Source: Macrostomum lignano (Eukaryota). Taken from it: a DNA stretch of 64,000 nt. This document shows, piece after piece, positions 1,840 to 26,358 of the stretch (position 1 is the stretch's first letter; every line of letters starts with the position of its first letter). The DNA is taken from assembly GCA_002269645.1 (NCBI GenBank), contig NIVC01002077.1, positions 124,001-188,000 on the forward strand, given 5' to 3'. The notes under the pieces were generated by a model. It searched no databases, was not told the origin of the DNA, and saw nothing but the letters and a program-made list of their open reading frames with translations. A program made the position numbers and the translations under genes.

Positions 1840-3593
1840 TCCTAATCATGGTTGGCAGACATCCAGTAGCATCTCAAAGAATTCCTCTAGAAAAAGGTGT
1901 AGGCCTACTATAGGGCCAACTTATAAAATCTAAATATACTAAATCTCTAAGTATATTTTCTAACATTATGTATTAAATTGGATCCTTTGAATAGACCTAA
2001 GCGCAAGCAACTAAGTGAGGCCTATTAGACTCAACTTATTCATAGTTTATTTGTTTATTTCCAGTTGTTTTTTCATCAGAAATGAACTTTAGCACAAATT
2101 CAAGTTTAGCAAATAATTCTTGAATGTTGCCACAAAGGCTTATTCTCTAACTTGCTTAAGTATAAAGTTAGGCCTTATATATACCAGAATTCTCTTATCA
2201 AAAAGAGATTATCCAAAAGTATAGGTTAAACATTTTGTGCATTTTATTTGTAGTCTTTTTAAAAAGAAGCCTAGCCTTAAACTAATAAAACTGCCTACAG
2301 ACCCTAGGTTGTGGCACACTTGTCTCTCTGACCCTAGCCATGCTTCATTGGCCAACCATGCAATGGCACCATGGCCAGGCCTGCACTTTCACTCTAATGG
2401 ATTGCCTCATTAGTCATTGCTGACTTGTAGGCGCTTGAGCTGACCCTTCATGCTGCTGCTGCCTACCCCTCCCACTTATTCTGCAAGTGCATATGTGCAA
2501 AGGGCTTTCCTTTTGCATCTTAATATATATATATATCTAGGGTTTTATTTTTTGCAAGAGACAAGGTGCAAAATCACACCTTATGCTCTCTTTTATGATG
2601 CAATTTTAAGGCTCAAAGTGCAATTTCTCTTTTTTCTTATTTTAAGGCAGTGTGAATGTGGCTTCAATGGAAAAAGAGGCTATAAGACTGCATATAAACT
2701 GCACATACTTTTCAATTTCAGAGTTGCAATTTTAAAATTTAGGGTGCATATACACACTGCGCACAAAAATAAACCCAGTATATATCTTGTAGTAGATTAC
2801 AGAAGTGTAGGGCCTATCCCAAAATATAATTTAAGGTTGTAAATAGAGGTTCCAAATCTTAGACATTTTATAATCCTAGGATCCTAGACAAAAAATTGAC
2901 CTAATCCTAGGATCCTGGGCCAATCCTAGGATTAAACAAACAAATTTATGGGAAACTTTCCATTGTCAACAAAATAAATTTCTTAACCAATTTGAGCATC
3001 ATTTGGGTTTTTACTTTCTATTTCTTGGCTTTCTTGTCTTTGTCCAATGTTTATTATTTATATATAATTGTACATATATACTAAACTATACCTTTTCCCT
3101 TTAGATTAAGATATATATGCTGCACTGGTGTCTATTTCTGCCTTTAAATATAGACTACCTCATATATATACACAGAGACTCAGATAGAGGCTCAGATCCA
3201 ATCCTTATACTACTTCCTTTTTGCCTCCTTTCCTCTCTTTTAACTACACCTGCACCCCACAAAGGGGCTCAAGCCAGTAGGTCTAATGTTCAGGCCATTG
3301 CCAATAGATAGTTGGACTAGAGTCTAGACTAGACCCTTATTTAATGTTAGTCTAGTGACTATGACTAGTAGTGCTTGATATAGTTGACTGATAATCCTAG
3401 GCCTAGGCCTACTATCCTTTTTTTGTAACTGCAAAAATTCTTTTAAAACTATTAATTAAGTGCTAGGCCTAACTGCAAGACAAAAAATATTCACTTTTGC
3501 AGTGTGAATTCCAATCCTGTGTTTACCGGGATCCCATACCCCTAATCCTGGTATCTTGAACACTAACAAAAAGCTGGGATCCTGGGATTGGGA

Positions 3594-4459
3594 ACAAGTA
3601 TAACTTTGGCTGTCAATTTTTCCGTTAAATTTTCCATTAGGCCTAACTATTCTGTCAACTATTCCGTCAACTTTTCGTGTTAGTAGGATAAATAACTTTA
3701 TCTGTCAACTTTTCCATTAACTTTTCCCTTAAGTATTCCATTAACTTTTCTGCTAACTATTCCGTCAAGTATTCCAATAATTTTTTTGTTAACTCTTCCA
3801 TCAACATTTTTGTTTACTATCCGTTAACTTTTCCGCCAAATATCTCATCACTTTTCCGTTAAATAATCCATCAACATTTATGCAAGTCTGTAAAATATAT
3901 TCTATCAAATTTTTTGTGTACTCTGAATGGAAAGTATTAATTTTTTGCATAAGTGCAGTTTCCTTAGTAATATTTTAGGGCCTATACATGCTTTAAATTT
4001 GTTGAGAGTATACACATGTACATGTATAAATTCTAAATAAAAAACACACAAAAATTTCCAGCGCGACGTGTTCCAGAATTTAATTGGTATTGCTGCACTA
4101 CCTGCACTACAACATCTGCACTTGTTTATTGATTTATTTTTGTGAAATGAAGCGCTGGTAGTAGAGAAAATGGAAAAAATTAAAGATGTATGTTGTTACT
4201 AACGCTGGCTTGTTTCTTTATCGATATATATAAGCATGCAAACACAATAAATGATCAAAGAGCTACTCGCATGATGATCCTATTTGAGAAAGTCACATAT
4301 GTGTTTTTTCAGAACAATAACTTGTTGACGGAAAATTTGACAGAATACTTGACGGAAAAGTTGACGGAATACTTGACGGAAAAGTTGACGGAATACTTGA
4401 TGGAAAAGTTGATGAAAAAGTTAATGGAAAAGTTGACAGCCAACCAAAGTTATACTCGT
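3594..4459. mobile_element. Non-autonomous DNA transposon (866 bp) with TIRs, subterminal tandem repeats and an 8-bp TSD
   Basis: Left end ACAAGTATAACTTTGGCTGTCAATTTTTCC; right end (reverse complement) ACGAGTATAACTTTGGTTGGCTGTCAACTTTTCC. GATTGGGA flanks both sides (3586-3593, 4460-4467). TTTTCCGTCAA-type subrepeats occur in opposite orientations at 3610-3880 and 4320-4440. Confidence 0.8.
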
Positions 4460-6254
4460 GATTGGGACCCCTTAGTTGTGAATTTTTAAGTAAGGAATAA
4501 CACTGCTAACAACAGTTTATAAAATATAAAATTCATATTATGCTAAAATCATGCTAAAATGCTAAAATCAAAATTAGCATTGTCTTTCTTATCAATTAGT
4601 TGCTTGGATCAAATGGCTAGAATAGAAGCTAGACCCTAGCCATAGGCCCTAGTCATAGGGCCTACTCATACTCATACATAGATGGGCAATGGAAGAAAGG
4701 CGCTAGATCTAGATGGAAATATAATAAAAAGCTAGGGCCTATATATTTTTCTTTAACGCACATCAATAATATTTTTAAAAAAGAAAAGGATTGCGAATTT
4801 GCATCCTGGATTCAATTTAAGACTCAGGATGTGAGTGCATGTGCATGTGCACCGCGATTTTCCTCCCTAATATATGATAATAAATTGCACAAAAACAGCG
4901 AATACAAGTAGATTTTTCTCAATAGAGAGCCATCGCTAAAACGATTAAATCTTAACCTAAAAAATGAAAACTCTATCTTCTTGTTATAAAATTAGTGTCC
5001 GAGTGCTTCCTGAGTAACAGAGTTTTCTTTCAACAAAATTTCTGATATTCATCGCAGAAAATATATTTAAAATCGTCGTTAATTAACCAAACAAAAAACA
5101 ATCAAGTAATTTTTTATGTTACTAAATACTTTTAGTGTTGTATTTCTATATTAACAAATTAAAGTTATAATTGTTATAAGTAGTAAATTTATCTAATGCT
5201 TGTTTTGCTATTTTTAAACGTCATATGTGATGTGTTAAAATTTGCTAAAATCGACAAAAAATTCGTGGAAAAGGGTCTGTGTGACGGCTACAACTCTATT
5301 CAAATCGAGAGGGATCTTTCTCGGTTCGTTCGGTCTCGTGAAATCATCGGGGTTTGCTGGATTTGCTACTTTTGAAGTTTAATCAAAAGAATGGTAGTTT
5401 AGTTTCAGACAAGTTGTTTTTTATAGCAATTCAATAACAAGTCGCATAATATTGCCTGACAAGTTACAACCTAAACTGTATTAACATACTGTAAGCCTAT
5501 GCTATGCTGTAATATGCATGTATGTAGATTATATATACACCAAAGTTGGGAAACTAAAAAGCAACAGCGTAAACGAAAGCCCAATTTGATCAGGTTAGCG
5601 CTTCTCCAGCTAAAGCTCTGCCACCATATGACCCGTCTGATCTAGTTTTAAGGACAATATGAGCTAGATCCCAAATCAACAACACTGCCCCCCGCCCCCT
5701 GAGTTGGGGATTCTCGACAGGCCACATAAGCAATAAACACAACACATGTACATGTACATGTACTCTTCGTATTTCAGTCTCAACATAAGCTGCTGCGTAA
5801 GTATTGGATTTGAAAAAAATGTCATACAAAAAACTAACAAACATTTTATTTAAGCGTAAAGTGTTTCTAAGTGTAGAAAAGCACACTAAATCGGCAGTAG
5901 TTATGGAGCAATTTTATTTTCTATTTCTACTAAAAACAACACAAAATCTGCAAGAAATTCTGAAATAAAAAAACAAGAATTAGTTATAAATTTAGAAATT
6001 TAATTAGAGCTAAAATCGCACGAGCCTCGAACTGAAAAAGCCAAATAGCGAGTGCATAATATGCAAAAGCAATACAGCCATACAACATACTAGCAAGCCG
6101 TTGAGTCACCTGCTGTCCTGCTGTCAATTTTTCAATAAGCTTGAATCAGTATGAAATATGTTGAAAAAATCATTGAAAAATCACTGGGCTGGTATAAAAG
6201 TCAGACCGCAGCATCTGTTTTTAAAAGCGTCATCCGTGATTACCCAAATTGATA

Positions 6255-9200
6255 TTAATCTTTCTTGGCGTCGGCGCCGCCTTGGCGACCACGGAATCCG
6301 GCCATGGAGTCGAAGACGCCAAAGAAGTTCAGCAGCTTGTAAGAGACGCTGACTGGCACCATCCTGAAAGGGGGGGGCAGCGGAATTTGCGGTGCCAGGC
6401 GGTGCGAAAGTCAGCTGTGCACTCTGTATGAGTGCCTGCTCTGGAGTCAGCGATATGGGCGGGATTGCCTGCCTCCTCGTATTGGTTCGCAGCAGGGCCC
6501 AAAGCCCTCTGAAAGCTAAATAACTGCGACGACTACAACTCTACTTGAGGCCGACGAGCTGGGGCCGACGATCGGTAGGTGGCGTCTCAGCAACTGAGGA
6601 TCTGGGAGGCTGGACCAGCAACTGAGGATCTGGAAGGCTGGCCCAGTAACTGACACTCTGGGAGGCTGGCCTAGCAACTGAGGATCTGGGAGCCTGGCCC
6701 AGCAACTGACACTCTGGGAGGCTGGCCGAGCAACTGACACTCTGGGAGGCTGGCCCAGCAACTGAGGATCTGGGAAGCTGGCCCAGAAACTGACACGCTG
6801 GGAGGCTGGCCCAGCAACTGAGGATTTGGGAGGCTGGCCCAGCAACTGACACGCTGGGAGGCTGGTTTCACATCCAGACGATACAATCAGAGAGCGCACT
6901 GTGATCTAAGCAGACCCCGGACTCACTTGTGAATGATATTGGTATAATAGAGCAGCCGCGGCAGCACCAGCAGCTCCTGGTTGGTAAGGATTGCTTGCAC
7001 CATCTTGTCAATCACATAGTCGGGATCCATCACGGGCAGCAGCCGAGGGAAGCGGCTGACCACGCCATCGAACATGCCGGTGTTAATGTAGTAGGGGCAC
7101 ACGCAGGTGGTGCGCACCCCGCCGTTGCCGCGGGAGGCCAGCTCGAATTTCAATGATTCGTCGAAGCCAACCGCGGCAAACTTGCTGGCACAGTAGTCAG
7201 AGAGGCTGGGCACCCCGAGCTGTGGAGTGAGCATGGTTGGCGAGCATTGGTCAGTGCTGGTCAGGGACTGAGGGATCGGGGTGGCCACTGAAGGATGGGG
7301 GGCTGAGGTGGTGGTGGCAGCCACTGAAGGATTGGGGAGGGGCTGAGGTGGCGGTGGCAGCCACTAAAAGACCAGGGGGGGGGGCTGAGGTGGCGGTGGC
7401 AGCCACTGAAGGATCAGGGGGGGGGCTGAGGTGGCGGTGGCAGCCACTGAAGGATCAGGGGGGCTGAGGTGGCGGTGGCAGTCACTGAAGGATCAGGGGG
7501 GGGGGCTGAGGTGGCGGTGGCAGTCACTGAAGGATAAGGGGGGCTGAGGTGGCGGTGGCAGTCACTGAAGGATCAGGGGGGGGCTGAGGTGGCGGTGGCA
7601 GTCACTGAAGGATCAGGGGGGCTGAGGTGGCGGTGGCAGCCACTGAAGGATCAGGGGGGGGGCTGAGGTGGCGGTGGCAGTCACTGAAGGATCAGGGGGG
7701 GGCTGAGGTGGCGGTGGCAGCTACTGAAGGATCAGGGGGGGGGCTGAGGTGGCGGTGGCAGCCACTGAATGATCAGGGAAGGCTGAGGTGGCGGTGGCAG
7801 TCACTGAAGGATCAGGGGGGGGGGCTGAGGTGGCGGTGGCAGCCACTGAAGGATCGGGGGGGTGAGGTGGCGGTGGCAGCTACTGAAGGATCAGGGGGGG
7901 GGCTGAGGTGGCGGTGGCAGCCACTAAAAGACCAGGGGGGGGGGGCTGAGGTGGCGGTGGCAGCCACTGAAGGATCGGGGGGGTGAGGTGGCGGTGGCAG
8001 CCATTGAAGGATCAGGTGGGGGGGGCTGAGGTGGCGGTGGCAGTCACTGAAGGATCAGGGGGGGGGCTGAGGTGGCGGTGGCAGCCACTGAAGGATCAGG
8101 GGGGGGGCTGAGGTGGCGGTGGCAGCTACTGAAGGATCAGGGGGGGGGCTGAGGTGGCGGTGGCAGTCACTGAAGGATCAGGGGGGGCTGAGGTGGCGGT
8201 GGCAGCCACTGAAGGATTGGGGGGCTGGGCAATGCTGGTCTCACCTGGCCGGCGCCCGAGGCCACGGTGACAATGTGGCCGCAGTTCCGCTCGATCATGC
8301 CGGGCAGCAGAGCTTTGCAAAGCCAGAAATGAGCCTCGATGTTCACCGCCATGGTTCGCCGAATCATGGCGTCCGGACAGTCTAGAAACGGTCGGCCAGT
8401 GACGACGCCGGCGTTGTTGACGAGAATGTCGACGCGCTGGCCGAAGTCGGCAAGCAGGCGCTCGCAGGTGGCGTAGATGGCCTCGCGCGAGCTCAGGTCG
8501 CATTGGTACGCCTGCACTTTTGGCGAGCCGGCCGAGCGGCACTCGGCGGCCACGTCGTCAACGCCGGTCGAGATGTCGATGAGGACGAGGCGGCAGCCGA
8601 GGCCGGACAGTCGGATGGCCAGTAGACGGCCGAGGCCGCTGGCTGATAACGGTTCCAGAGATGTTGTGTTTTATGTGTGATATTTAATCGCCTACTTAAG
8701 AGTAGCAATATAATGATATGCAAAAATATTACAAACTGATAGTTACATAAAAATCGACCAGCAGACAGAGTAGTGAACTCAGATGCTATGGTCTTTCGCG
8801 AGTTGGAATATCCGTTTTGAAATTTACATGTAAAACTTTTGAAAGTGAAATTGTTATACTTTCGATACATATCGGAAGAAAATACTAGCAGTTTTTCTAT
8901 ACTTCGATACATATCGGAAGGAAACACTAGTAGATTTACTATACTTTCGATACATATCGGAAGAAAATACTAGCAGATTTTTTATACTTTTGATACATAT
9001 CGGAAGAAAAAACTACTCGTATATAGTAAATCTATAATGTTTTTGAGACATATCGTAAGAAACTACTAGTAGATATATATCATACTTTCGATACATATCG
9101 GCAGGAAATACTATAAAGTAGATATATTTTACTTTCGATACATATCTGAAAGAAAATACGGTAGATTAGAACAATAACAAAGAAACTTTTAGATATGGCA

Positions 9201-9448
9201 GCTAAATTTTGAAGCCGGCACAGGCTAAATTGAAAGGAGCTACTATGAGTAGGCAGTTAATCAGATTGAAAAGTACGAGAAAATCACCAGTAAAACCGCC
9301 GCTTACCAGCGCCAGTAACCACGGCTGTCTGGCCGGAGATGTTTTTGCTGCGCCAGGAGGCTGGGGTGAAATTGTTGTAGGCGCTCTTGGCAATGTCAGC
9401 TACAATCTGGCAGAGCAGACAGACCACTTCAGTTAAGATTGCGAGCAT
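6255..9448 (-). CDS. Short-chain dehydrogenase/reductase, SDR16C family (RDH10/SDR16C5/HSD17B11-like), 4 exons, 313 aa
   Basis: Exons 9448-9307, 8642-8245, 7219-6927, 6363-6255; all GT-AG; phases 1,0,2; 942 nt. Motifs: N-terminal hydrophobic anchor, TGAASGLG, LVNNAGV, VASGAG, YCASKFA, VCPYYINTGMF. Confidence 0.92.
6580..6870. repeat. 28-bp minisatellite (~10 copies) in SDR intron 3
   Basis: Unit CAGCAACTGAGGATCTGGGAGGCTGGCC and variants. Confidence 0.9.
7280..8225. repeat. ~39-bp minisatellite (~24 copies, variable G-run) in SDR intron 2
   Basis: Unit G(n)CTGAGGTGGCGGTGGCAGCCACTGAAGGATCA. Confidence 0.95.
8860..9150. repeat. ~42-bp tandem repeat with CGATACATATCG palindromic core (SDR intron 1)
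   Basis: About 7 copies of CTTTCGATACATATCGGAAGAAAATACTAG...; same family as 10560-10925. Confidence 0.85.
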
Positions 9449-9647
9449 TTTCGCAACGTTTGGAACTGAAACAGCGAGATATTCGCATTATCTACTGTAA
9501 GTAGTCCGTAGCAGCTATTTTATTCAGATCAATAAATTCTTCAAAAAAGTATGAAAATTAATTGCAGCTTACAGAAAAAATAAAGATTTGCCACTTCGTA
9601 CATTTTCTGTGTGATAATAAATGCTGCTTAAATATTCAGTATTCCAT

Positions 9648-9653
9648 TTTTAT
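9648..9653 (-). promoter_or_regulatory. Putative poly(A) signal (AATAAA) of TMEM242
   Basis: TTTATT on the plus strand, downstream of the TMEM242 stop and about 200 bp upstream of the SDR ATG. Confidence 0.5.
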
Positions 9654-9769
9654 TCTACATGAAAAAAATCTTTATGCACAAGACAGAGGGCAAGCTGGTT
9701 TATAAAACCTGAATGATCAGTATAACAAACAAACAGGCATGAAGGGACAGCTGAAAAGACTGTTAAACA

Positions 9770-10055
9770 TACAGGTGAAACACACATGCGAAACACACAT
9801 GCGAAACACACAGAGGTGAAACACACAGGTGAAACACACAGGTGAAACACACACAGGTGAAACACACACAGGTGAAACACACACAGGTGAAACACACCCA
9901 GGTGAAACACACACAGGTGAAACACACACAGGTGAAACACACACAGGTGAAACACACACAGGTGAAACACACACAGGTGAAACACACACAGGTAAAACAC
10001 ACACAGGTGAAACACACACAGGTGAAACACACACAGGTAAAACACACAGGTAAAA
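9770..10055. repeat. 15-bp minisatellite between the TMEM242 stop and its poly(A) signal
   Basis: Unit CAGGTGAAACACACA, about 19 copies. Confidence 0.95.
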
Positions 10056-10104
10056 CACAAATAAAACACAAAGTCGCACAGGTGGTACAGTACTCGCAGC
10101 TCAG

Positions 10105-11053
10105 CTATCTGTCCCCAGTCCGCCCAGCCCTGGCATCCTCGCTCAGCAGAAAGTCCACCAGCTCCCGAACAGTTTTGAAGTCCCGCCGACCGCCGCTCGG
10201 CGAAGCGGGCGACGCCGGAACGCGCAGATCGGCGAGGCTGCGAACTCCAGCCAGGGCAAGGGAGGCGGCAGTGACGACCGAGACGCCAACAAATGCGGCG
10301 GCGCTGCCCCAGCCGAGGGCGCGCAGCGCCAGGCGAGTCCCGTCGGCGCCGTGTCGAAGGCTGGCACCGGCGCTGCCGCTAGCGGAAGCTTCGGCGGCTT
10401 CCCTGCGCCGGGACAAAGCGACCGTGGCGCCGAAACCGGCGCCGGCTGAGGTGAGCGCCGTGCCGACGAGCAGCAGGGCGGGCGCAACTCCTGGCCGGTG
10501 CTCGTCGTTGCCAAGCGGGTCCGACTGAAGTTCGAATTGCGAGAGAAAGCGAATTACTAGTAGATTTTTTATACTTTCGATACATATCGGAGGGAAATAC
10601 TAGCAGATTTTTTATACTTTCGATACATATCGGAGGGAAATACTAGTAGATTTATTATACTATCGATACATATCGGAAGGAAATACTAGTAGATTAATTA
10701 TACTATCAGAGGGAAATAGTAGTAGATTTATTTTACTTTCGATACATATCGAATGGAAATACTGGTAGATTTATTATACTATCGATACATATCGGAGGGA
10801 ATTACTAGTAGATTTATTATACTATCGATACATATCGGAAAAGAAATACTAGTAGATTCATTATATTTCTAATTGGAAAATAATTCTAGCACAGTAAAGT
10901 TACAGTATTTTTGATACATATCGGAAAGGCATAAACATTTTCTAGCATTTTATTAAGCTAAAAGATAAAATAATGTAAAAAAGGCATTTTTTTTCAAATA
11001 TGTTAAAAGATATGCACTCTAAAACTAACATTCGCAAATGAAAATAGCGCCAT
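10105..11053 (-). CDS. TMEM242: TMEM242 (DUF1358) mitochondrial membrane protein, 2 exons, 147 aa
   Basis: Exon 1 11053-11030 (MALFSFAN|gttagt); exon 2 10524-10105 (cttcag|SDPLG...); phase 0. It contains the family signature LALRALGWGS, two hydrophobic segments and a C-terminal GRRDFKTVRELVDFL. Confidence 0.88.
10560..10925. repeat. ~43-bp tandem repeat with CGATACATATCG core (TMEM242 intron)
   Basis: About 7 cores; same family as 8860-9150. Confidence 0.85.
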
Positions 11054-11184
11054 TTATTTTCAACAGTTAATCAGTCAAACCAAAGGCGAACACTTCACTT
11101 GTTGATGAGAAGTACACATATCCCGAATAGAACGCAATTCTTTAATAATAAAAATGCTGTATTACATAGATTGGACTGGGATGG

Positions 11185-11710
11185 TGTACACTGGGCTGAG
11201 GTTGGTGGCGGGGGGAAGCTGAGTGTACACTGGGCTAGAATTGGTGGTGGGGAGAGGTTGAGTGTACACTGGGCTGGGGTGGTGGCGGCGGGGAGTGGTT
11301 GAGTGTACACTGGGCTGGGGTGGTGGCGTCGGGGAGAAGCTGAGTGTACACTGGGCTGGGGTGGTGGCGGCGGGGAGAAGCTGAGTGTACACTGGGCTGG
11401 GGTGGTGGCGGCGGGGAGAAGCTGAGTGTACACTGGGCTGGGGTGGTGGCGGCGGGGAGAAGCTGAGTGTACGCTGGGCTGGGGTGGTGGCGGCGGGGAG
11501 AAGCTGAGTGTACACTGGGCTGGGGTGGAGGTGGGGAGAGGCTGAGTGTACACTGGGCTTGGGGTGGTGGTGGGGAGAGGCTGAGTGTACACTAGGCTGG
11601 GGTGGAGGTGGGGAAAGGCTGAGTGTACACTGGGCTGAGGTGGTGGCGGGGAGAGGCTGGGTGTACACTGGGCTGGAGTGGTGGCGGGGAGAGGCTGGGT
11701 TTACACTGGG
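11185..11710. repeat. 41-bp minisatellite (~13 copies) downstream of the TRMT10C-like stop
   Basis: Unit GCTGAGTGTACACTGGGCTGGGGTGGTGGCGGCGGGGAGAA. Confidence 0.95.
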
Positions 11711-11739
11711 CAATGGGCGCAGCAGTGCATAAAGAGTAC

Positions 11740-12356
11740 TCAGACCAAGCCGGCATCGAAGTTTGGGTCACGCCTGGCTGTCAGCCGGTTCAAGATGATT
11801 CGCCAATCTTGCTGCGCACCATGGGAGATGCGCATGGCTAGCAGAACTCTGGCGAGGACCTCCAGGTCGGGCCGCACCGTTTTGGGCAAGGCGTCAAGCG
11901 GCAGGCGAACACAGAGGGCGCCGGAGCGGACGGCCTGACGGGCCAAGGTCCGGTTCAGACCGCTGGTCCGATTGACAACGCAGGGCAGCACGTAGACAGC
12001 GTCGGGCCTCCAGCAGGTCAGTAGCTTCATCGCGTCCGGGGAGATGAAAATCAGAGCGCGGCCAGGCGGGGCCATCTCGCGCCAAGGACGCGATGTTCGA
12101 ACAAATTCTGTGGCTGGCGGCGGCGGCGACTGCAGCGCGCCGTCGAGACGGCGCTGGAGTCGGCCGTGTGGCGACAGGCCGCAGAGGGTCGGGAGGAACG
12201 GCAGGCCGTGCCGGCGGTTGCAGCGGAGGAGGCGGCGGAGCTGCGTGCCGACCTGGGAGCGGGGGTGGTGAGGATGGGGAGACTCGAAAACTGATTGGCA
12301 GCTGCTTCTGGGAGTGCTGGCAAGTGGAAGGAAAGAAGTCAGACAGACAGCCAGGC

Positions 12357-12392
<36 letters not shown>

Positions 12393-12430
12393 GGACAGGC
12401 ACAGGCAGGCAGGCAGGCAGACAGGCAGGC

Positions 12431-12479
<49 letters not shown>

Positions 12480-12506
12480 GGCAGGCAGGCAGATAGGCAG
12501 GCAGGC

Positions 12507-12579
<73 letters not shown>

Positions 12580-12624
12580 GGCAGGCAGGCAGACAGAGAC
12601 AGTCAGGCAGACAGACAGACAGGC

Positions 12625-12656
<32 letters not shown>

Positions 12657-12658
12657 AC

Positions 12659-12689
<31 letters not shown>

Positions 12690-12738
12690 GGCAGGCAGGC
12701 AGACAGAGACAGACAGACAGACAGACAGACAGGCAGGC

Positions 12739-12775
<37 letters not shown>

Positions 12776-12798
12776 GGCAGGCAGATAGGCAGGCAGGC

Positions 12799-12842
<44 letters not shown>

Positions 12843-12918
12843 GGACAGACAGACAGGCAGGCAGACAGGCAGGCAGGCAGAAAGACAGGCAGGCAGACAG
12901 ACAGACAGTCAGGCAGGC

Positions 12919-12971
<53 letters not shown>

Positions 12972-13088
12972 GGCAGGCAGGCAGACAGAGACAGTCAGGC
13001 AGACAGACAGACAGACAGGCAGGCAGACAGGCAGGCAGACAGGCAGACAGACAGACAGACAGACAGACAGACAGGCAGGCAGAAAGAA

Positions 13089-13123
<35 letters not shown>

Positions 13124-13416
13124 AAAACAGTCAGGCAGACACACAGACAGACAGGCAGGCAGACAGGCAGACAGGCAGGCAGGCAGACAGACAGACAGAC
13201 AGAAAGACAGTCAGGCAGACAGACAGACAGACAGAAAGACAGTCAGGCAGACACACAGACAGACAGACAGACAGGCAGGCAGACAGGCAGGCAGACAGGC
13301 AGGCAGGCAGACAGACAGACAGACAGACAGAAAGACAGTCAGGCAGACAGACAGACAGACAGAAAGACAGTCAGGCAGACACACAGACAGACAGACAGAC
13401 AGACAGGCAGGCAGGC

Positions 13417-13465
<49 letters not shown>

Positions 13466-15824
13466 GGCAGGCAGACAGACAGACTCATGCTACTCACGCT
13501 GAAGACATCCGCATAGCTAAGCTGCTCCTCCCAGGATGCGTCCAACAGCAGCGGCGGGCGCTCCTGCCAGTCCTTGGGCGTCTCCAAGCTGGACGACTCG
13601 GCCTCTTCGCCGACAGCGGCATCGGCGTCGTCCTCGTCGTGGCTATGGCGAATCGATCGCAGATTGTTTAGCAGCTCCAGACTGTCCGTAGCCGATAGTG
13701 CCTCGTGCCAGGCGTCCTCGTCGAACCGGTTGAGATCGGGGGCGACCTCTTGCAGCGGCGGCGAGTTGCAGATCATGGCCTGCGCCTGCGAAGTGTTAGC
13801 GTTTTATCACGAACTTTGCGGACACGAGCTCTGCTGGAATTGAATCCTGACCTTGACTGAACTCTGAATGCTGATTTTGACCTGAACTCTGAATCCTGAC
13901 CTTGACTGAACCCTGAATGCTGACCTTGATCTGAACTCTAAATCCTGACCTTAAATGAACCATGAATCCTAACTTTAAAATAAACCCTGAATCCTGACCT
14001 TAAATGAACCCTGAATCCTAACTTTAAAAAAAACACTGAATCCTGACCTTAAATGAACCCTGAATCCTAACTTTAAAATAAACCCTGAATCCTGACCTTA
14101 AATGAACCCTGAAACCTGACCTTAAATGAACCCCGAATCCTAACTTTAAAATAAACCCTGAAACCTGATCTTAAATGAACTTTTAAACCTGACCTTAAAT
14201 AAACCTTGAAACCTGACATTAAATGAACCCTGAAACCTGACCTTAAACAAACCTTTAATCTTGATCTTAAATGAACCCTGAATCCTGATCTTAAATGAAC
14301 CCTGAATCCTGACCTTAAATGAACCTTGAAACCTGACCTTAAATGAACCCTGAAACATGACTTTAAATGAACCCTGAAACCTGACCTTAAATAAACCCTG
14401 AAACGTGACCTCAAATAAACCTTGAATCCTGACTTTAAAGTCACAGAATTTCACCTGGATTGCCAGCACGCTGCTAATCAATGCCTGTCGGCGCTCCGCC
14501 TCCGGCCGGCTCATGTCCAGGGCGGCGGGGCAGACGCAGTCGAGCAGCGGCGACAGAATTCGCAGCATCCGCAGCCGGGCATTGGCGTTGGCTTTGTCCC
14601 GGCTGCTCTGCCACTGACGGCGCCAGACTTGACAACAACATTTCCACTGGCGCCCGAGTAGCGGCGCCTTTGCTGACAAGCGCTGAAACAGAAAATATGA
14701 GGCTGAAGTTTTTTTTTCCTTGAGCAGATTTAGAGTAGGAAAAAAGCAATTCAATCATTCTATCCAACGCCGATCTCTTGATATGGGTTGCCGGATTTGG
14801 TGCTAGGGATCGCTGATTCGAGTGCTAGGGAACGCTGATCCAGTTGCTAGGGAATGCTGATTCAGTTGCTAGGGAATGCTGATTCAGTTGCTAAGGAATG
14901 CTGATTCAGTTGCAAGGGAATGCTGATTCAGTTGCTAAGGAATGCTGATTCAGTTGCTAGGGAATGCTGATTCAGTTGCTAGGGAATGCTGATTCAGGTG
15001 CTAGAGAATACTGATTCAGGTGCTAAGGGTCGCTGATTCAGGTGCTAAGGGTCGCTGATTCAGGTGCTAAGGGTCGCTGATTCAGGTGATAAGGGTCGCT
15101 GATTCAGGTGATAAGGGCCGCTGATTCAGGTGATAAGGGCCGCTGATTCAGGTGATAAGGGCCACTGATTCAGGTGATAAGGGCCGCTGATTCAGGTGAT
15201 AAGGGCCGCTGATTCAGGTGATAAGGGCCGCTGATTCAGGTGATAAGGGCCACTGATTCAGGTGATAAGGGCCACTGATTCAGGTGATAAGGGCCGCTGA
15301 TTCAGGTGATAAGGGCCACTGATTCAGGTGATAAGGGCCGCTGATTCAGGTGATAAGGGCCGCTGATTCAGGTGATAAGGGCCACTGATTCAGGTGATAA
15401 GGGCCGCTGATTCAGGTGATAAGGGCCGCTGATTCAGGTGATAAGGGCCGCTGATTCAGGTGATAAGGGCCACTGATTCAGGTGATAAGGGTCGCTGATT
15501 CAGGTGCTAGGGAATGCTGATTCAGGTGTTTAAGGAGTGCTGATTCAGGTGCTAAGGAGTGCTGATTCAGGTGCTAAGGAGTGCTGATTCAGGTGCTAAG
15601 GAATGCTGATTCACGTGCTAAAGAATGCTGATTCAGGTGCTAGGGAATGCTGATTCAGGTGCTAAGGCTCGCTGATTCATCAGGTGCTAAGGCTCGCTGA
15701 TTCAGGTGATACGGGTCGCTGATTTGGTGCTAAGGAGTGCTGATTCAGGTGCTAAGGGGCGCTGATTCAGGTGATAAGTCGCTTTAAGCAGCTTTAAAAT
15801 GATTAACAGAACTGACTTGAACAT
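11740..15824 (-). CDS. TRMT10C: TRMT10C/MRPP1-like (mitochondrial RNase P protein 1, Trm10 SPOUT domain), divergent; 5' end needs a +1 correction or a downstream start
   Basis: Firm exons: 14682-14455, 13785-13498, 12252-11740; the two junctions between them are phase 0, GT-AG. The spliced segment [20 protein letters not shown]|[19 protein letters not shown]...LIFISPDA...[10 protein letters not shown]...RLPLD aligns to TRMT10C (PLVFDMAY...SQL...NRR..PF...YLTADS...VYVIGSFVD...LPLD). Probable exon 1 is 15824-15817 (ATGTTCAA|gtcagt). An alternative start is 14568 (MLRILSPLL). Confidence 0.78.
12338..13485. repeat. Compound (CAGA)n/(CAGG)n microsatellite, i.e. TCTG/CCTG on the sense strand of a TRMT10C-like intron
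   Basis: About 1.15 kb tetranucleotide tract. Confidence 0.97.
13845..14440. repeat. 24-bp minisatellite in a TRMT10C-like intron
   Basis: Unit AAATGAACCCTGAATCCTGACCTT, about 24 copies. Confidence 0.93.
14800..15780. repeat. 22-bp minisatellite (~44 copies), probably filling TRMT10C-like intron 1
   Basis: Unit GCTGATTCAGGTGATAAGGGCC and variants. Confidence 0.95.
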
Positions 15825-15930
15825 TAGTTTAACGTCTTCACATTATGAAACTTGGAATTAGTAAGACAGTGGTAAGATAAGCAAGGAAGTCAGCAAGAGC
15901 GCGTGTAAACTTATAATCAGCCATATGCGA

Positions 15931-15936
15931 TTTATT
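15931..15936 (-). promoter_or_regulatory. Putative poly(A) signal (AATAAA) of the aminotransferase-like gene
   Basis: About 90 bp after the stop at 16028 and about 107 bp before the candidate TRMT10C-like ATG at 15824. Confidence 0.55.
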
Positions 15937-16027
15937 TATGTAAAAATGCACTAACATAGTGCTTATAAGTACTACTGACACGAATTATGAAGCAAAAAAT
16001 CCTACGATGCTACTATGTAAAAGTAGT

Positions 16028-18387
16028 TTATTCTGCGTATCGTTCCAGCAAGCTCCGATGAAAGGCAATCAGACGATTCAATCGTTCGAGTAGAACTTGT
16101 TCCGAGCATTTGATGCTGATGCTCCGCCCTCTCCTCCGCTACCCCCTCCGCCCTCTCCTCCGCTACCCCCTCCGCCCTCTCCTCCGCTACCCCCTCCGCT
16201 ACCCCCTCCGCCCTCTACTCCGCTACCCCCTCCGCCCTCTCCTCCGCTACCCCCTCCGCCCTCTACTCCGCTACCCCCTCCGCCCTCTCCTCCGCTACCC
16301 CATCCGCCCTCTCCTCCGCTACCCCCTCCGCCCTCTACTCCGCTACCCCCTCCACCCTCTCCTCCGCTACCCAGTCTCTTCAGCTACTCATGGCCGTCAT
16401 TGGCATCGCTGGCACGCAGATAAAAATCGCAAACCTAACAAAGAAGCCTCCGTCCGCAAGGCGCGGCTTGAGGCCAAAGTGGCTCCCTGGAAGCAGCCAG
16501 TTGTGGCAGTCTTTATCGGCAACAACTTGCAGAGCAGCCCGGCAATAGGCGGCATCGGCAGGCTCGGCGGCGGAGACACTTCTCAGCCAGCCAGCCGGCG
16601 GTCCGGCCATCATCGGGCAGATTCGACCGCCTGCGCTAGGCATCGGCGCCAAAATTGCCGCGCCAGATTCGAGCAGGGCGCGCCCAGTCAGGGCGGCTTT
16701 TCGTCGAAGCGAACCAGCGGCGGCTGCCAACTCGACGGCAAAGCCAGCGTGCGACGGACTGTCCGGACCGGGCGGGGTCGACACGGACATGGCTAGGGCG
16801 GCCTGGCCGAGCACAGGCGGACAGGAGGTACAGGACAGCACAGCCAGCAGCGCCGCCTTGGCAGTCGGGTGCAAATTTAGCAGCTCGCAGAAACCAGCGC
16901 GAAGTCCGGGATCGCCGCCACCGCACAGACCTGACGGTGGCGCGCAGGTTTCAAGTTGTAAGCCGCCTGTCCGCTATTCTCATCTGCCTGTCCATCACCC
17001 TCAACTGCCTGTCCACTACCCTCATCCGCCTGTCCGCTATTCTCATCTGCCTGTCCATCACCCTCAACTGCCTGTCCGCTACCCTCATCTGCCTGTCCGC
17101 TACCCCCATCTGCCTGTCCGCTACCCTCATCTGCCTGTCCGCTACCCTCATCCGCCTGTCCGCTATTCTCATCTGCCTGTCCATCACCCTCAACTGCCTG
17201 TCCGCTACCCTCATCTGCCTGTCCGCTACCCCCATCTACCTGTCCGCTACCCTCATCTGCCTGTCCGCTACCCTCATCCGCCTGTCCGCTACCTTAATCG
17301 CTTGTACCTTCGCTAAGCGAGGTCACCGAGGCGACTTCAAGCGGCGGCAGGTCGGGCCGCGCCGCCTGCTGCTCAAGGACCAATTGGCGAAATCCGACGA
17401 ACTGCTGCTCGTTGTAGAACTGGGCGAACTGCAGAGTCTCGTCGGAAATCACAAACAGTCGGCGACGGCGAGCAAAATCGGCGGCGAGCTGCAGGGAGGC
17501 AGCCGTCAGCAGCTGGCCGGTGGGGCGGCCGGGGTTCAGCAGCACCAGAATGCGCGGCTCACCGCCTGCCTCCACAGCTGACTGAAAGCGAATGCGGATG
17601 TGATTTGCACAACACAATACTACTTACTGAGTAGTTAAAGCCTTAAAGTGGCGCAGAGATCCCTTAGTAACAGACGGTGACAGGGGCGCCAGGGGCTCCA
17701 CGGGTGCGAAAGAGTGACCGACTACAGGGATATGCCAGACGGTGACAGGGACTACACAGGGATGCCAGACGGTGACAGGGACTACACAGGGATGCCAGGT
17801 GACAGGGACTACAGGGATGCCAGAAGGTGACAGGGACGAACACGACTGACCCGATAGGCGGCCTCTAGCTCGGTCTCGGCCAGCTGCCAGCCAGCAGTCG
17901 GTGGCGCGGTCAGCCTGTACGGTACCGGCAGGACGCCGACCTGATGGGCGAAGGCGGCGTACATTGACCGGCCTGGCGCCGGAATCAGCGCCGCCGCCGG
18001 TTTCGATTGTCTGCGACCGAAGCCTTCGAGTAGCAGGCGGACGGCTTCGGCGGAGCCGCAGGTCACCATGACGTCATCGACTTGGCTGGCGCCGCCGTCG
18101 CGCCTAGCGAGAAAATCGGCGCACAGCTGCCTGACGGCGAACTGGCCGCCAGTGTGCGTGTAGGAGCCCAGGCTGGCGCCGGGGAACTCAGCTAGCAGGC
18201 GTTTGGCCATAGCGACAACATCGGCCGGGTAGCAACCAGCGCCCGACCTGGCCAGCAAGCCCGGGTCCAGCATCAGGGCCAGGACCTGTCTCAGATAAGT
18301 CAGCGGCTTTGACTCGCCCTTATCTGCCTGTTGACTCTGGCCAGCCAAACTGGCAGACTCAACTGATGCCGCCATTTTGTTCAACAG
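16028..18387 (-). CDS. Alanine aminotransferase (GPT/ALT)-like class I PLP-fold protein, highly divergent, catalytic Lys replaced by Glu
   Basis: Exons 18387(or ATG 18375)-17851, 17581-17308, 16930-16435, 16115-16028; phases 0,1,2; about 460 aa from ATG 18375. It is collinear with ALT1: KPLTYLRQVLAL, LGSYT, RRDGG, LNPGRPTGQ, ISDETLQ, SLSEG...GLRAG, CPPVLGQA, LLPGSHFG, C-terminal LERLNRLIAFHRSLLERYAE. The last intron boundaries are less certain. Confidence 0.82.
16120..16372. repeat. 24-bp minisatellite in the last intron of the ALT-like gene
   Basis: Unit CCGCCCTCTCCTCCGCTACCCCCT, about 10 copies. Confidence 0.93.
16965..17292. repeat. 21-bp minisatellite in an ALT-like intron
   Basis: Unit CCGCTACCCTCATCTGCCTGT, about 15 copies. 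Confidence 0.93.
17670..17835. repeat. ~30-bp minisatellite in an ALT-like intron
   Basis: GGTGACAGGGACTACACAGGGATGCCAGAC, about 5 copies. Confidence 0.85.
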
Positions 18388-18660
18388 CTGACAAGCTTTT
18401 TCTAACTATAGCTGTGCTTCTGGAAACTTTTAAATGTTAAAATGACAAAAGTAACAAGGGGCGCCCACTGCAAGTGGACTTACTAAATAAGCTAAGATAA
18501 GGCCAGAAGTGATCTGAGGTCAAAGACCGGCTGACCTTTATTTATGTCAATGCTACAATAAATACAGAGTGGTGTTAAGCTTGTTTATTCCAATACTTTG
18601 CTCTAGACATTACAAACCAGTTTGAACTAGTTCTGTGACTTTTATCTCTTGCCGACTTAC

Positions 18661-18687
18661 CAGATCCAGGGTCTGAGAATTATGCAG
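18661..18687 (-). CDS. Probable small upstream exon of the ALT-like gene ((LHNSQ)TLDL)
   Basis: A perfect GTAAGT donor lies at 18660-18655 and joins in phase 0 to the acceptor at 18388. The product TLDLLLNKMAASVESASLAG resembles ALT1 TLDGMNPRVRRVEYAVRG. The acceptor may be at 18688 or 18673. The start codon is unresolved. Confidence 0.45.
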
Positions 18688-18894: not shown

Positions 18895-19320
18895 TCCTGG
18901 AATCCCTGTTCCCTCTATAGCACCCTTGGAATTCCTGTTCCCTTTAAATCACCTCTGGAATCCCTGTTCTCTATAGCACCCTTGGAATCCCTATTCCCTT
19001 AAAATCAACCTTGAAATCCCTGTTCCCTCTATAGCACCCTTGGAATCCCTGTTCCCTTTAAATCACCTCTAGAATCCATGTTCCTTTTAAATCACCTCTG
19101 GAATTCCTGTTCCCTGTATAGCACCCCAGGAATCCCTGTTCTCTATAGCAACCCCTGGAATCCTATTCTTTCTATAGCACTCCTAGAATCCCTATTCCCT
19201 TAAAATCAACACTTGAAATCCCTGTTCTTTTTATGGTATCCCTAGAATATATGTTCCCTTTATAGCATCCCTAGACTAGAATCTCTGTTCTCTCTATAGC
19301 ACCCTGGGAATCCCTGTTTC
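18895..19320. repeat. Degenerate ~29-bp tandem repeat
   Basis: GGAATCCCTGTTCCCTCTATAGCACCCTT-like units. Confidence 0.85.
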
Positions 19321-22140
19321 CTCTATAGTAAAAGGTATTCTAAAATTTTGACTTTGATTTTAATTTTCCAAATTTTAGAATCTTCAAGTGCATATGTTGA
19401 TTTTGATTTTGATATAAAATACACTTTTGGAACATCTCTACTCTAATATACTTAGAACCCCCAAAAGAGATTTTTATATTGTGATTATCTCTATTTAGCA
19501 TATACTAGCATATCCCTAAAGCAAATCCCTTTGTGTGGTAATTAGCCAAGATGCATAAATGGCTTGTATTTCAGCTTTGGCATACTATGCTATCTCTTAT
19601 TTCAGGAATATTTGTTTGACTTCTATACTTGGTAGAACTAGTTATTCATATACTTAGCAATGCTGGGACCTATCTTATTTAAGGCTATCATAAACTATAA
19701 TTTATAAAGATATAACATACATGTGCTACAAAATTACTTTTTGTTTTCTAAAAATGAACATTTAAAAGGGATGAAGCTTTAATAATAAATGGAATTTCTA
19801 ATCTGCAAATTATATTTTACCCTAAAATTTCAATAAATAAATACCAATAGCTTATTACTATTGTCATTATTATTCTGTTTTGAAAATAAAGTAGTTAATG
19901 GCTATTTAAGAAGTCCTACTTAAGTTTTCCACTCCCAAATCTTACATATATGCCAGAAAATTCTATTATACAATTAACTTGAAAAAATGGTTGGCATAAA
20001 GTATTTAGCATATAGAACAATCTGCTAGAAAATTGCACCATAGAGCCAGCATATGGTATGGCATAGCTATTGGTATATTTTTGATAATGTCTTGTATATA
20101 TATCATGAGTAAATTTGTTTTTTGGCATAAATTTGATTTTATGGTGTAGGCCAGTAGGGGGTCATTTTAAAGAAAAAAATATCATACTTAATAGTTTTAT
20201 GAGTGCAGCTAGAGTAAAAATTTTAAATTTAAGAATGATAATAAATTTTAACATAGACTGTTAAAGGTAAAAAATGCATATGTTTTCATTACTTATGCTT
20301 GCAGCTTGTCTTGTCTTATCTAAATTTTTTATCTTGGGACTTGGGACTTAAAATTATATTGAGAATAAAATTTTTATATTGAGAATAAATTTTTAGCCTA
20401 ATATTGGTAATAATATAATGTCTCATTGTTTCAATTTCAACTTCGTTTTTTATGTTTTGCTAAATAAAATACTCATTATGATGCTCTTTTTTTAAGCTCC
20501 ACTATTCTAGGCCTATCCGAACTATCAATATACAATTATACACATATTGTTTTAAGGTTATTTGTTAGTGATAGCATAGTAGAACTTTGAAAAAAGAAAC
20601 TATGATAACCTTAACCTTTCTCGGTCATATAACCTATATTACAGTTTATAATATTATATGTAACCTATCATGGCCATGGATATGGTCACTAATAAAAAAC
20701 AAAAAAATAGTTGCTCAATTATTTTTCGCTTGACAAATTTATATACAATAAATAATATTGGATAAAGGATCATATAAAAAAACAATAGGCTAGACCAAGG
20801 ATCACAATACATAAACAAAATAAGGCCTAGCAGTCAAAGAAAAAAAAATTTTAAAGATCAAAAACAGAATGCCAAAATGCATACAATATCGAGCAACAGC
20901 AATCATTCAAATGAATTTCAAAAGGCAAGTTCTAACGTTTCTTAGGAAATTATATAATTGAACGTAATATTTACTGCCGTGCATTTTTAACTACAATTAA
21001 TAATAAATACTTCAAAAGGCTTTTATATGAAATAAAGTGCAAAAATTGAATTAAAATAAATAATTCTTATAGTTTAAAAAAGTTTTCAAACGCATTTTAC
21101 TAAACATAATTTCGTTTTGTTACTGAGGTTGTGAAGCCTTTAATTTATTGCATACACACTTGTGGACTCCACTCTTTTAGTTTGGGCAAGTATAATAAAA
21201 TTTTGAAAATAAATGTACACAGCAGTGTAATAGTGTACAAAGTGGCTAGCTTGTTGCTAAGTAAGCACTACACAATATTTTTGTTCGGCTTTCCAAACTT
21301 AAACTATTGTCGTCTTTATTTATTAGAAATAAATATCTCCGTGTCAAAATCCCGTGAATTCGTTCGTTTTATATTTTATATCTCGAGTTTGTTCCTTCTT
21401 TCCATCATTTAGCCTTAATAGGCCCCTATTTCTAATGCTCGTTTCAATTTTTGTTGGACACTCACAAAAAATTAATTAGTGAATAGGCCTAGCCTACTAT
21501 ATCCTTTAGTTTAGTTTTAAATTTAAAAAATAAATTCAAGTTTTTGATTGGTTCAATTTTTGGACAATGTTCAAGGACTAGGCCTACTACTACCTTGACT
21601 TTTAATTAAAGGGCCTTACTTTACTAAGGTAGTAAGGAACTAAGTTGCCCTTGATCATCTTCGTGCTTTTTACTATTAGTATTAGGCCAAAACCTGTGTA
21701 ATGTTTTCTGTGTAGGCCTAAGGATAGGTAGGCCTAGGTGCTTATTTTCAAAATTTATATTATATTACACATAATTTTGACTTTTTGTCACACTCTTTAG
21801 TTATTTGTTTTAGTCTATTTAATTAACCTGGTCTTGCTTTTATATCAAGCTAGAGCTAGAATAAAGGTGGCCCCTTAGTGCAAAGTCTATTTATTTATTG
21901 ACTAGGCCTAGGCCTAGGCCTACTCTAACATACTAAAGCTGATTCAAGGCATATCCAAAGAAAAAAATAATTGAAGTTGTGTTAATTGAATAATTGCATT
22001 TGCATTTTTCATTTTGAGATATAATTTATCTTAGCTAATTTAAAAATTTTTAATAGGTCCTAAGCCTATGTTATAATATTAGGACCTAGGCCTAGAAATA
22101 AAACCTTTAACCGTTAGACCCATGGCCATAGACCCTAGCC

Positions 22141-26245: not shown

Positions 26246-26276
<31 letters not shown>

Positions 26277-26307: not shown

Positions 26308-26358
<51 letters not shown>

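Follow-up and report, generated by a model that had tools for sequence, protein, structure and literature searches.

On the minus strand of scaffold NIVC01002077.1 (Macrostomum lignano assembly Mlig_3_7), four unrelated genes follow one another head-to-tail, raising the question of whether they form one polycistronic unit resolved by spliced-leader (SL) trans-splicing, as the initial annotation had proposed. All coordinates refer to the 64,000-nt stretch that was analyzed (the window), which matches this scaffold at 100% identity, and the genes were labeled A to D in transcription order. Our results suggest, at a probability of about 0.75, that A–D belongs to the SL-resolved operons known from M. 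lignano. The proposal was right in kind, as indicated indirectly by the shared unit names, the partial CDSs, the acceptors, and the spacing, but it misplaced two of the three junctions.

The gene order was borne out by both the GenBank annotation and our own spliced models, which were identical to the GenBank proteins (Table 1). In the window ORF list, the plus-strand ORFs between genes A and D were solely repeat derived. No ORF of at least 80 aa was found in the flanks (approximately 6 and 7 kb; positions 1–5600 and 19,300–25,700), and the next gene upstream of the cluster lies on the plus strand, in divergent orientation. Neither the Rfam nor the tRNA scan of the window gave a match, and a scan for an SL RNA gene or SL-like sequence found none in the window. 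Two paralogous loci, L002 and L003, were used for comparison.

Table 1. Features of the A–D locus in the window, listed in the direction of transcription; a slash marks a splice boundary.
Feature	Position	Strand	Remarks
Possible 5′UTR intron of gene A	18420..18661	-	Candidate from motif scan; donor CTG/GTAAGT (intron start 18660), acceptor TTTCCAG (last G 18420)
Gene A, ALT2-like aminotransferase, 462 aa, PAA61052.1, Mlig033698g5	16028..18375	-	Exact GenBank match
Gene A exons	18375-17851, 17581-17308, 16930-16435, 16121-16028	-	First cistron; own ATG
AATAAA, likely poly(A) signal of gene A	15931..15936	-	Sole AWTAAA hexamer in A-to-B spacer
22-nt tandem repeat, 44 copies	14799..15778	-	Most of A-to-B spacer
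Predicted SL trans-splice acceptor of gene B, TTTCAG	14683..14688	-	Exon starts 14682; identical in three paralogues
Gene B, TRMT10C-like, 344 aa, PAA61051.1, Mlig033757g2, 5′-partial	11740..14682	-	Exact GenBank match
Gene B exons	14682-14455, 13785-13498, 12252-11740	-	No own ATG at start; SL AUG in frame
ATTAAA, candidate poly(A) signal of gene B	11141..11146	-	Alternatives AATAAA 11058-11053, 10954-10949
43-nt tandem repeat in B-to-C spacer	10551..10869	-	319 nt
Predicted SL trans-splice acceptor of gene C, CTTCAG	10525..10530	-	Exon starts 10524; identical in three paralogues
Gene C, TMEM242/DUF1358, 133 aa, single exon	10105..10524	-	Exact GenBank match; CDS 5′-partial from 10506
AATAAA, likely poly(A) signal of gene C	9519..9524	-	Kept in all three paralogues; base 9519 is 52 nt upstream of acceptor G 9466
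Predicted SL trans-splice acceptor of gene D, TTTCAG	9466..9471	-	Exon starts 9465, 17 nt before ATG 9448; identical in three paralogues
Gene D, SDR16C-type dehydrogenase, HSD17B11/13-like, 316 aa, PAA61049.1, Mlig033698g4	6255..9448	-	Exact GenBank match; last cistron
Gene D exons	9448-9307, 8642-8245, 7219-6927, 6363-6255	-
ATTAAA, first candidate poly(A) signal past gene D	5999..6004	-	AATAAA also at 5918, 5850

The identities initially given to the genes (ALT-like, TRMT10C-like, TMEM242, and SDR16C) hold on the PDB, Pfam, and homologue matches. Gene A aligned over its full length with human ALT2 (PDB 3IHJ; E 9e-48). In this alignment, STSKG was changed to SLSEG, NPGNPTGQ to NPGRPTGQ, and DEVYQ to DETLQ, and the PLP-binding Schiff-base lysine (S-x-S-K-G) and the PLP-contact residues were not found; gene A is a homologue, though probably no active transaminase, and its dN/dS was roughly 0.5. 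A Pfam search with the gene B protein itself stayed below thresholds, with nothing even at E 10, and the family was therefore assigned through PDB and distant homologues. The best PDB matches were human TRMT10C (E 1.6e-6, residues 152–316), and the TRM10-type SPOUT domain (Pfam tRNA_m1G_MT, PF01746) was present in 26 of 26 distant homologues. Judged from its sequence, gene B is a divergent TRMT10C-like protein. At the catalytic-Asp motif it reads LPCVVNRT, whereas D occupies that column in 21 of the 26 homologues and human TRMT10C reads IGSFVDKS; the catalytic aspartate of the (I/V)GG-x-V-D motif was thus not found in the alignment of gene B to its homologues. We take this aspartate to be D314 in the human protein. 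Gene C contains the DUF1358 domain with its conserved LALRALGWGS core (Pfam PF07096, E 2.4e-13), and its homologues carry the name TMEM242 in insects and vertebrates. The classical SDR motifs TGAASGLG (TGxxxGxG), NNAG, and YCASK (YxxxK) are present in gene D, whose closest matches were HSD17B13 (E 3.9e-60) and HSD17B11 (E 4.7e-59), with the next SDRs weaker by approximately 30 orders of magnitude. By these motifs and matches, gene D is a member of SDR16C (the HSD17B11/13 and DHRS3 group).

M. lignano has a single SL, with the acceptor motif [T/C]TNCAG, and approximately 15% of its genes (approximately 10,000 genes) are in operons, which show a modal repeat-adjusted spacing of approximately 100 bp, a threshold of 1 kb, and spacers inflated by repeats (PMC8629364). 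By the criteria of that study, A–D show same-strand adjacency with no opposite-strand gene between them. From stop codon to acceptor, the A-to-B, B-to-C, and C-to-D spacers measured 1345, 1215, and 639 nt, and approximately 365, 340, and 301 nt after repeats were removed, that is, below 1 kb with the 3′UTRs counted. The raw spacers of 1.2 to 1.3 kb are big enough to hold a promoter. The motif [T/C]TNCAG was found at 14683, 10525, and 9466 and was identical in the three paralogous loci. An acceptor alone is no proof of an operon, because approximately 60% of SL-trans-spliced M. lignano genes lie outside operons (PMC8629364).

At these acceptors, the predicted SL–exon junctions read …GCATG/CGCTTGTC for gene B (exon from 14682), …GCATG/TCGGACCC for gene C (exon from 10524), and …GCATG/TTCCAAAC for gene D (exon from 9465). 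The annotated CDS of gene B begins at 14688, 6 nt before the exon start, and the GenBank and UniProt models translate its acceptor TTTCAG as "FQ." The annotated CDSs of genes C and D, the latter also 5′-partial, start 18 and 8 nt after their exon starts. Since the frames of B, C, and D are open for 22, 31, and 10 codons further upstream, the annotated starts were set by the annotated transcript 5′ ends; owing to the offsets, these ends were used only as approximate markers and not as SL sites. In L002, the annotated CDS of gene D starts at the first in-frame codon past the acceptor AG.

The initial annotation had read the junctions from nearby poly(A)-type hexamers and ATGs. Its motifs are where it placed them (AATAAA 15936, ATTAAA 11146, ATGs 15824, 11053, and 9448, CTAATTCCAAG ending at 15851, and CTCGCTGTTTCAG ending at 9466), except that the AATAAA put at 9653 lies at 9654. 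This last hexamer (9654–9649, in the C-to-D spacer) reads AATAAG in L002, and AATAAA 15936 is kept in L002 and not in L003. On their own, poly(A) hexamers are weak evidence; one to three were observed per nonrepeat spacer (300–365 nt, approximately 32% GC) versus 0.6 to 0.7 expected. Of its SL sites, only the one at 9466, the predicted TTTCAG acceptor of gene D, was right. The sites proposed at 15850 and approximately 11097 were not supported, the predicted acceptors lying instead at 14683 and 10525, behind repeat-filled spacers. As genes B and C do not start at 15824 and 11053, the described hexamer-to-start spacing of 90 to 200 bp applies to the C-to-D junction only and fails at the A-to-B and B-to-C junctions.

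For the anatomy first described to be exact, gene B would start from ATG 15824 (acceptor 15851) and gene C from ATG 11053 (acceptor approximately 11097), with short first exons cis-spliced over the repeats to the GC-rich exons. After ATG 11053, GCGAAT/GTTAGT does join exon 10524 in frame to give MALFSFAN-SDPLGN, the area around 11053 is conserved among the paralogues, and some true donors in the A–D genes are nonconsensus. However, this candidate donor, the only one in phase, is GC in L003, and the ATG overlaps an AATAAA hexamer. The GenBank CDSs of gene B (at three loci) and gene C (from 10506) start at the GC-rich exon as 5′-partial, whereas a transcript with an ATG exon further upstream would yield a complete ORF. 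The ORF from ATG 15824 enters the 22-nt tandem repeat and ends there, its only in-phase GT being TCA/GTTCTG, and the block that holds AATAAA 15936 and ATG 15824 is nonhomologous in L003 even though gene B is intact there. In addition, a motif scan found no GT[AG]AG donor in the A-to-B or B-to-C spacer, and CTAATTCCAAG does not match [T/C]TNCAG. We therefore consider these upstream starts highly improbable.

The case for co-transcription rests on annotation names. In the published annotation, multigene precursor transcriptional units were divided only on the basis of SL reads or poly(A) evidence (PMC5730564), and a shared prefix denotes a shared transcriptional unit; for example, unit Mlig030697.1 holds Mlig030697.g1 and Mlig030697.g2. 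Genome-guided assemblers can fuse neighbors by read-through. The prefix Mlig033698 is common to genes A (g5) and D (g4), and at L003, genes A (Mlig004283g1) and B (Mlig004283g2) likewise share one. These shared prefixes indirectly support a polycistronic precursor. Gene B at the present locus carries another prefix, Mlig033757, which a single unit does not directly explain. The identifiers Mlig033698, 033757, 004283, and 009287 did not occur in the published full texts or supplementary tables searched. Exact-protein look-ups for gene B returned the genome assembly alone, and the protein-cluster members of A, B, C, and D came only from NCBI, UniRef, and MetaClust (genome-derived and UniRef entries). 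In homology searches for gene order, gene B gave M. lignano matches only, and TMEM242 gave insects, vertebrates, one TARA marine contig, and one vertebrate-like RNA contig with an unrelated neighbor.

The genes could instead be closely packed yet independently transcribed, each from its own promoter in the repeat-rich spacers, with B, C, and D trans-spliced merely to remove a short outron and the shared names produced by read-through or assembler fusion. The large nonoperonic share of SL-trans-spliced genes, the raw lengths of the A-to-B and B-to-C spacers, and the deviating prefix of gene B would all fit, as would the authors' own statement that transcriptional units are imperfect where intergenic regions are repeat rich (PMC8629364). 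Nevertheless, we regard independent transcription as unlikely. The nonrepeat sequence from stop codon to acceptor amounts to only approximately 300 to 365 nt with the whole 3′UTR included, and the conserved C-to-D AATAAA ends just 52 nt upstream of the gene D acceptor. Unlike conserved promoters, the spacers consist of variable tandem repeats; the 43-nt repeat spans 319 nt here versus 3.9 kb (90 copies) in L003. Moreover, the prefixes link A with D and A with B.

Under the operon reading, RNA polymerase II would start 5′ of gene A, and probably also of a short noncoding exon that ends at 18661, and would transcribe approximately 12.5 kb through all four genes. Both sites of the candidate 5′UTR intron of gene A are kept in L003, and such an intron would place a promoter, together with a noncoding first exon, upstream of 18661. 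The paralogue L002, in which the 5′ half of gene A is seemingly absent, was considered as a test of the dependence of B–D on the A promoter and rejected, because an LTR-retrotransposon-like gag-pol element fills L002 1–5400 and gene A exons 1 and 2 may sit past the fetched flank. Each upstream mRNA would be released by cleavage and polyadenylation after its AWTAAA signal, and the downstream cistrons would be capped by trans-splicing of the single 35-nt SL (…TTGCATG) onto [T/C]TNCAG, giving the predicted exon starts 14682, 10524, and 9465.

AUG forms the 3′ end of the SL (…CAATTTATTGCATG). In genes B and C, it lies in the frame of an ORF that is open throughout, and neither exon start has an ATG of its own; the SL AUG is thus most likely the start codon of both. 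The gene C product would then begin M-SDPLGN.... In gene B, the first 30 residues after an SL AUG start include seven basic and one acidic residue, and such a start would give an N terminus resembling a mitochondrial presequence. Translation of gene D would use the ATG of the gene itself, the SL AUG opening no more than a short upstream ORF, and the same would apply to gene A if that gene is trans-spliced. We tentatively propose, at somewhat less than even odds, that B and C depend fully on the SL AUG; for these two mitochondrial-type proteins, trans-splicing would then be needed for translatability beyond capping and would create the gene B presequence, and gene A may be kept mainly as a promoter-bearing head.

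In Caenorhabditis elegans, operons contain two to eight genes, most often spaced by approximately 100 bp. Common to the SL2-type operons of C. elegans and the present locus would be a polycistronic precursor in which upstream 3′-end formation is coupled to downstream SL trans-splicing. C. elegans has a specialized SL2 for downstream genes and compact spacers, whereas M. lignano has one SL (PMC8629364) and the A–D spacers hold up to 1 kb of tandem repeats; A–D would thus work like an SL2 operon without being of the SL2 type. Operons of parasitic flatworms, such as UbCRBP–enolase in trematodes (PMC12582326), come from the same phylum and have SLs ending in AUG, short intercistronic regions, and no specialized SL, but their gene content differs from that of A–D. 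Use of the 3′-terminal AUG of a flatworm SL as initiator Met has been demonstrated experimentally in Schistosoma mansoni (Cheng et al. 2006, J Biol Chem 281:733, as cited in PMC12582326 and PMC9851317). The S. mansoni SL likewise ends in AUG, and at the A–D locus we infer initiator use from the reading frames only. No statement on the SL AUG as initiator in M. lignano was found in the literature examined.

The closest counterparts are the SL operons of M. lignano itself (Wudarski et al. 2017, PMC5730564; Ustyantsev and Berezikov 2021, PMC8629364), which have the same 35-nt SL and [T/C]TNCAG at each downstream cistron. They likewise lie on one strand, with repeat-adjusted spacing below 1 kb, repeat-inflated spacers, and conserved housekeeping genes. 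Four-gene examples have been published (Fig. 2c; PMC5730564/PMC8629364), and A–D differs from them in kind by nothing. These papers do not describe the A–D locus individually, and its membership is implied solely by the GenBank names.

A–D is therefore ordinary for the M. lignano genome, with its thousands of documented SL operons, and of little import beyond annotation, as GenBank already carries the locus under names implying a shared unit. In this genome, an operon junction cannot be located from the closest ATG or poly(A) hexamer, since tandem repeats shift the true acceptor by up to approximately 1.2 kb downstream. Many "5′-partial" CDSs of M. lignano, those of genes B and C among them, may be complete after the SL AUG is added, and the A–D locus offers a compact test case for SL-AUG-dependent translation in an organism in which transgenesis works.

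The four minus-strand, head-to-tail genes of the cluster (A, ALT2-like; B, TRMT10C-like; C, TMEM242; D) were spliced by hand, and their translations were compared with the deposited proteins. All four gene models matched these proteins exactly. For gene B, human TRMT10C gave the best PDB matches (E 1.6e-6), all 26 of 26 distant relatives belonged to Pfam tRNA_m1G_MT, and a search with the model found a single protein, 'BOX15_Mlig033757g2, partial [Macrostomum lignano]', with 100% identity. The genomic locus of this protein, on NIVC01002077.1 (assembly GCA_002269645.1, Mlig_3_7), matches window 1740-24688 without a difference, on the opposite strand. Gene D was identified as SDR16C (HSD17B13/11 match, E about 1e-60).

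Features of the gene cluster and its surroundings (positions within the window; a slash marks the predicted junction)
Feature	Position	Strand	Structure	Details
Gene A	18375-16028	-	4 exons	462 aa; PAA61052.1, Mlig033698g5; aminotransferase class I/II; human ALT2, E 9e-48
A-to-B spacer			1345 nt, stop codon to acceptor	980 nt of 22-mer repeat; non-repeat about 365 nt
Gene B acceptor	14683	-	TTTCAG/CGC	predicted, motif match
Gene B	14682-11740	-	3 exons	344 aa, 5'-partial; PAA61051.1, Mlig033757g2
B-to-C spacer			1215 nt, stop codon to acceptor	528 nt of 41-mer (in 3'UTR) and 319 nt of 43-mer; non-repeat about 340 nt
Gene C acceptor	10525	-	CTTCAG/TCG	predicted, motif match
Gene C	10524-10105	-	1 exon	GenBank CDS from 10506, 133 aa; DUF1358/TMEM242
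C-to-D spacer			639 nt, stop codon to acceptor	293 nt of 15-mer; non-repeat about 300 nt
Donor-like site	9568-9572	-	GTAAG	C-to-D spacer, between two AATAAA
Gene D acceptor	9466	-	TTTCAG/TTCC	predicted, motif match
Gene D	9448-6255	-	4 exons	316 aa, 5'-partial; PAA61049.1, Mlig033698g4
Deubiquitinase gene	about 25700-41000	+	large, multi-exon	UCH domain, DUF3517
Homeobox gene	about 56100-59800	-	homeodomain split over 56959-57348 and 56097-56618	low-complexity stretches rich in Gln/His/Ala

The M. lignano trans-splice acceptor motif, [T/C]TNCAG (PMC8629364), directly abuts the first GC-rich coding exon of genes B, C and D, and the three sites do not differ among the paralogous loci L001, L002 and L003. 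The GenBank CDSs of these genes are all 5'-partial and start at 14688 (B), 10506 (C) and 9457 (D). Upstream of these starts the frames stay open for another 22, 31 and 10 codons, respectively, indicating that annotated transcript ends, rather than stop codons, fixed the starts. Under the published pipeline, a transcriptional unit is split internally only where SL reads or poly(A) evidence support it (PMC5730564). Relative to the exon starts, the annotated end is 6 nt upstream for gene B, 18 nt downstream for gene C and 8 nt downstream for gene D, so these ends served only as approximate markers. The L002 SDR CDS begins with PNVSKM, at the first in-frame codon past the AG. The "5'-partial" CDSs of genes B, C and D appear to be artefacts that SL trans-splicing introduced into the annotation. 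For gene B, both the GenBank model and the independent UniProt model A0A1I8HP06 begin with 'FQ', the translated TTTCAG acceptor (14683-14688).

When the M. lignano SL, CGGTCTCTTACTGCGAAGACTCAATTTATTGCATG (PMC8629364), was joined to 14682, its terminal ATG was in frame with the gene B ORF, in which no ATG precedes codon 41. Joined to 10524, the ATG was in frame with TMEM242 (M-SDPLGN…), and the gene C ORF was intact from the acceptor onward in all three paralogues. In Schistosoma, initiation at the SL AUG is established (Cheng et al. 2006, as cited in PMC12582326 and PMC9851317). From the reading frames, we infer that the SL AUG is probably the initiator for genes B and C. With this AUG, the first 30 residues of gene B include 7 basic and 1 acidic, and the predicted N-terminus looks like a mitochondrial presequence. 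For gene D, the SL AUG does not share the frame of the coding sequence and starts an upstream ORF of 11 codons.

The initial annotation had read the cluster as a four-gene SL operon, with gene B starting at ATG 15824 and gene C at ATG 11053. All of the motifs that it quoted were found, at most 1 nt away, and the operon interpretation was supported in kind; the two start codons were not. From ATG 15824, an ORF of 44 codons enters the 22-nt repeat and stops. The sole in-phase GT of this ORF is TCA/GTTCTG, and a motif scan found no GT[AG]AG donor in the A-to-B or B-to-C spacer. At L003, gene B is intact but unrelated sequence takes the place of the whole block that contains AATAAA 15936 and ATG 15824. 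ATG 11053 is the tail of AATAAATG, and its sole in-phase donor, GTTAGT, is GCTAGT at L003. One of the three predicted junctions lies where it had been placed and two were wrong in detail, and it is highly improbable that the original anatomy is exactly correct.

Each spacer, taken as 300-365 nt at roughly 32% GC, contained 1-3 poly(A) hexamers versus 0.6-0.7 expected, and by themselves these hexamers are weak evidence. In the C-to-D spacer, the AATAAA at 9524 is the one kept at all three loci, and its last base, 9519, is 52 nt before the G of the acceptor at 9466; the previously proposed hexamer at 9654 is AATAAG at L002. The donor-like GTAAG, upstream of the gene D acceptor, could give a minor cis-spliced C-D read-through isoform. 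The repeat-adjusted distance is below 1 kb, the published operon criterion (PMC8629364), at all three junctions. Spacers of published M. lignano operons are inflated by repeats (PMC8629364), as are all three here. In the L003 spacer the 43-mer has expanded to about 90 units (3.9 kb, L003 12849-16739), and this repeat family occurs in both the B-to-C spacer (10551-10869) and gene D intron 1 (8855-9159).

Across the window, GC varied from 25% to 63%, with exons at 55-65% and unique intergenic DNA at 25-36%. Almost every intron and spacer, and likewise the 3'UTRs, carried a different tandem repeat (high copy, periods of 4-48 nt, up to 2.6 kb). No ORF of at least 80 aa was found in the AT-rich flanks of the cluster (window 1-5600 and 19300-25700). 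The upstream neighbour, which begins near 25.7 kb on the plus strand, encodes a deubiquitinase of USP9X/24/34 type; it is divergent from the cluster and separated from it by an AT-rich gap of about 7 kb, also devoid of such ORFs. The cluster is therefore isolated, with gene A as its head. Upstream of gene A, a good donor (CTG/GTAAGT, 18660) and an acceptor (TTTCCAG, 18420) are both kept at L003, suggesting that the first exon of gene A may be non-coding and preceded by an ordinary promoter. This would match the 18% of published M. lignano operons that begin with a non-trans-spliced gene (PMC8629364).

Gene A lacks the PLP Schiff-base lysine (SLSEG for STSKG), has two further PLP-contact changes (NPGRPTGQ for NPGNPTGQ; DETLQ for DEVYQ), and differs from L003 at 7 synonymous and 10 nonsynonymous codons, suggesting that it is probably a decaying enzyme or a pseudoenzyme. 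The L003 annotation of gene A is exon-skipped (280 aa). At L002, only exons 3-4 fall inside the fetched locus, exons 1-2 lying outside; directly upstream of a remnant of intron 2, on the same strand, is a gag-pol ORF of LTR-retrotransposon type (L002 1-5400; 1489 aa, then 345 aa with integrase-like sequence), its family assigned by eye only. Gene B differs from L002 at 10 synonymous and no nonsynonymous codons and is under strong purifying selection; for gene D the counts are 6 and 1 against L002 and 14 and 3 against L003. The last exon of gene B (11740-12252, minus strand) reads LPCVVNRT, with Asn, as in both gene B paralogues, in the (I/V)GG-x-V-D column. This is the site of the proposed catalytic Asp, and 21 of the 26 relatives have D there. 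The gene B product may be a methyltransferase-inactive scaffold.

Evidence for co-transcription came from gene names. In Supplementary Fig. 5a of Wudarski et al., the transcriptional unit Mlig030697.1 holds the genes Mlig030697.g1 and.g2 (PMC5730564), indicating that a common prefix denotes genes split from a single transcriptional-unit cluster. Genes A and D share the prefix Mlig033698; the ALT-like gene of L003, Mlig004283g1, likewise shares its prefix with the TRM10-like gene there, Mlig004283g2. These prefixes point, indirectly but specifically, to precursors assembled from RNA-seq that extend across the cluster. A single unit does not explain the different prefix of gene B (Mlig033757), which may reflect duplicate CDS removal at GenBank submission. 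We consider it unlikely that the genes have independent promoters and are trans-spliced separately, and we assign a probability of about 0.75 to the cluster being an SL operon. SL operons are well known in M. lignano, and this locus was already annotated.
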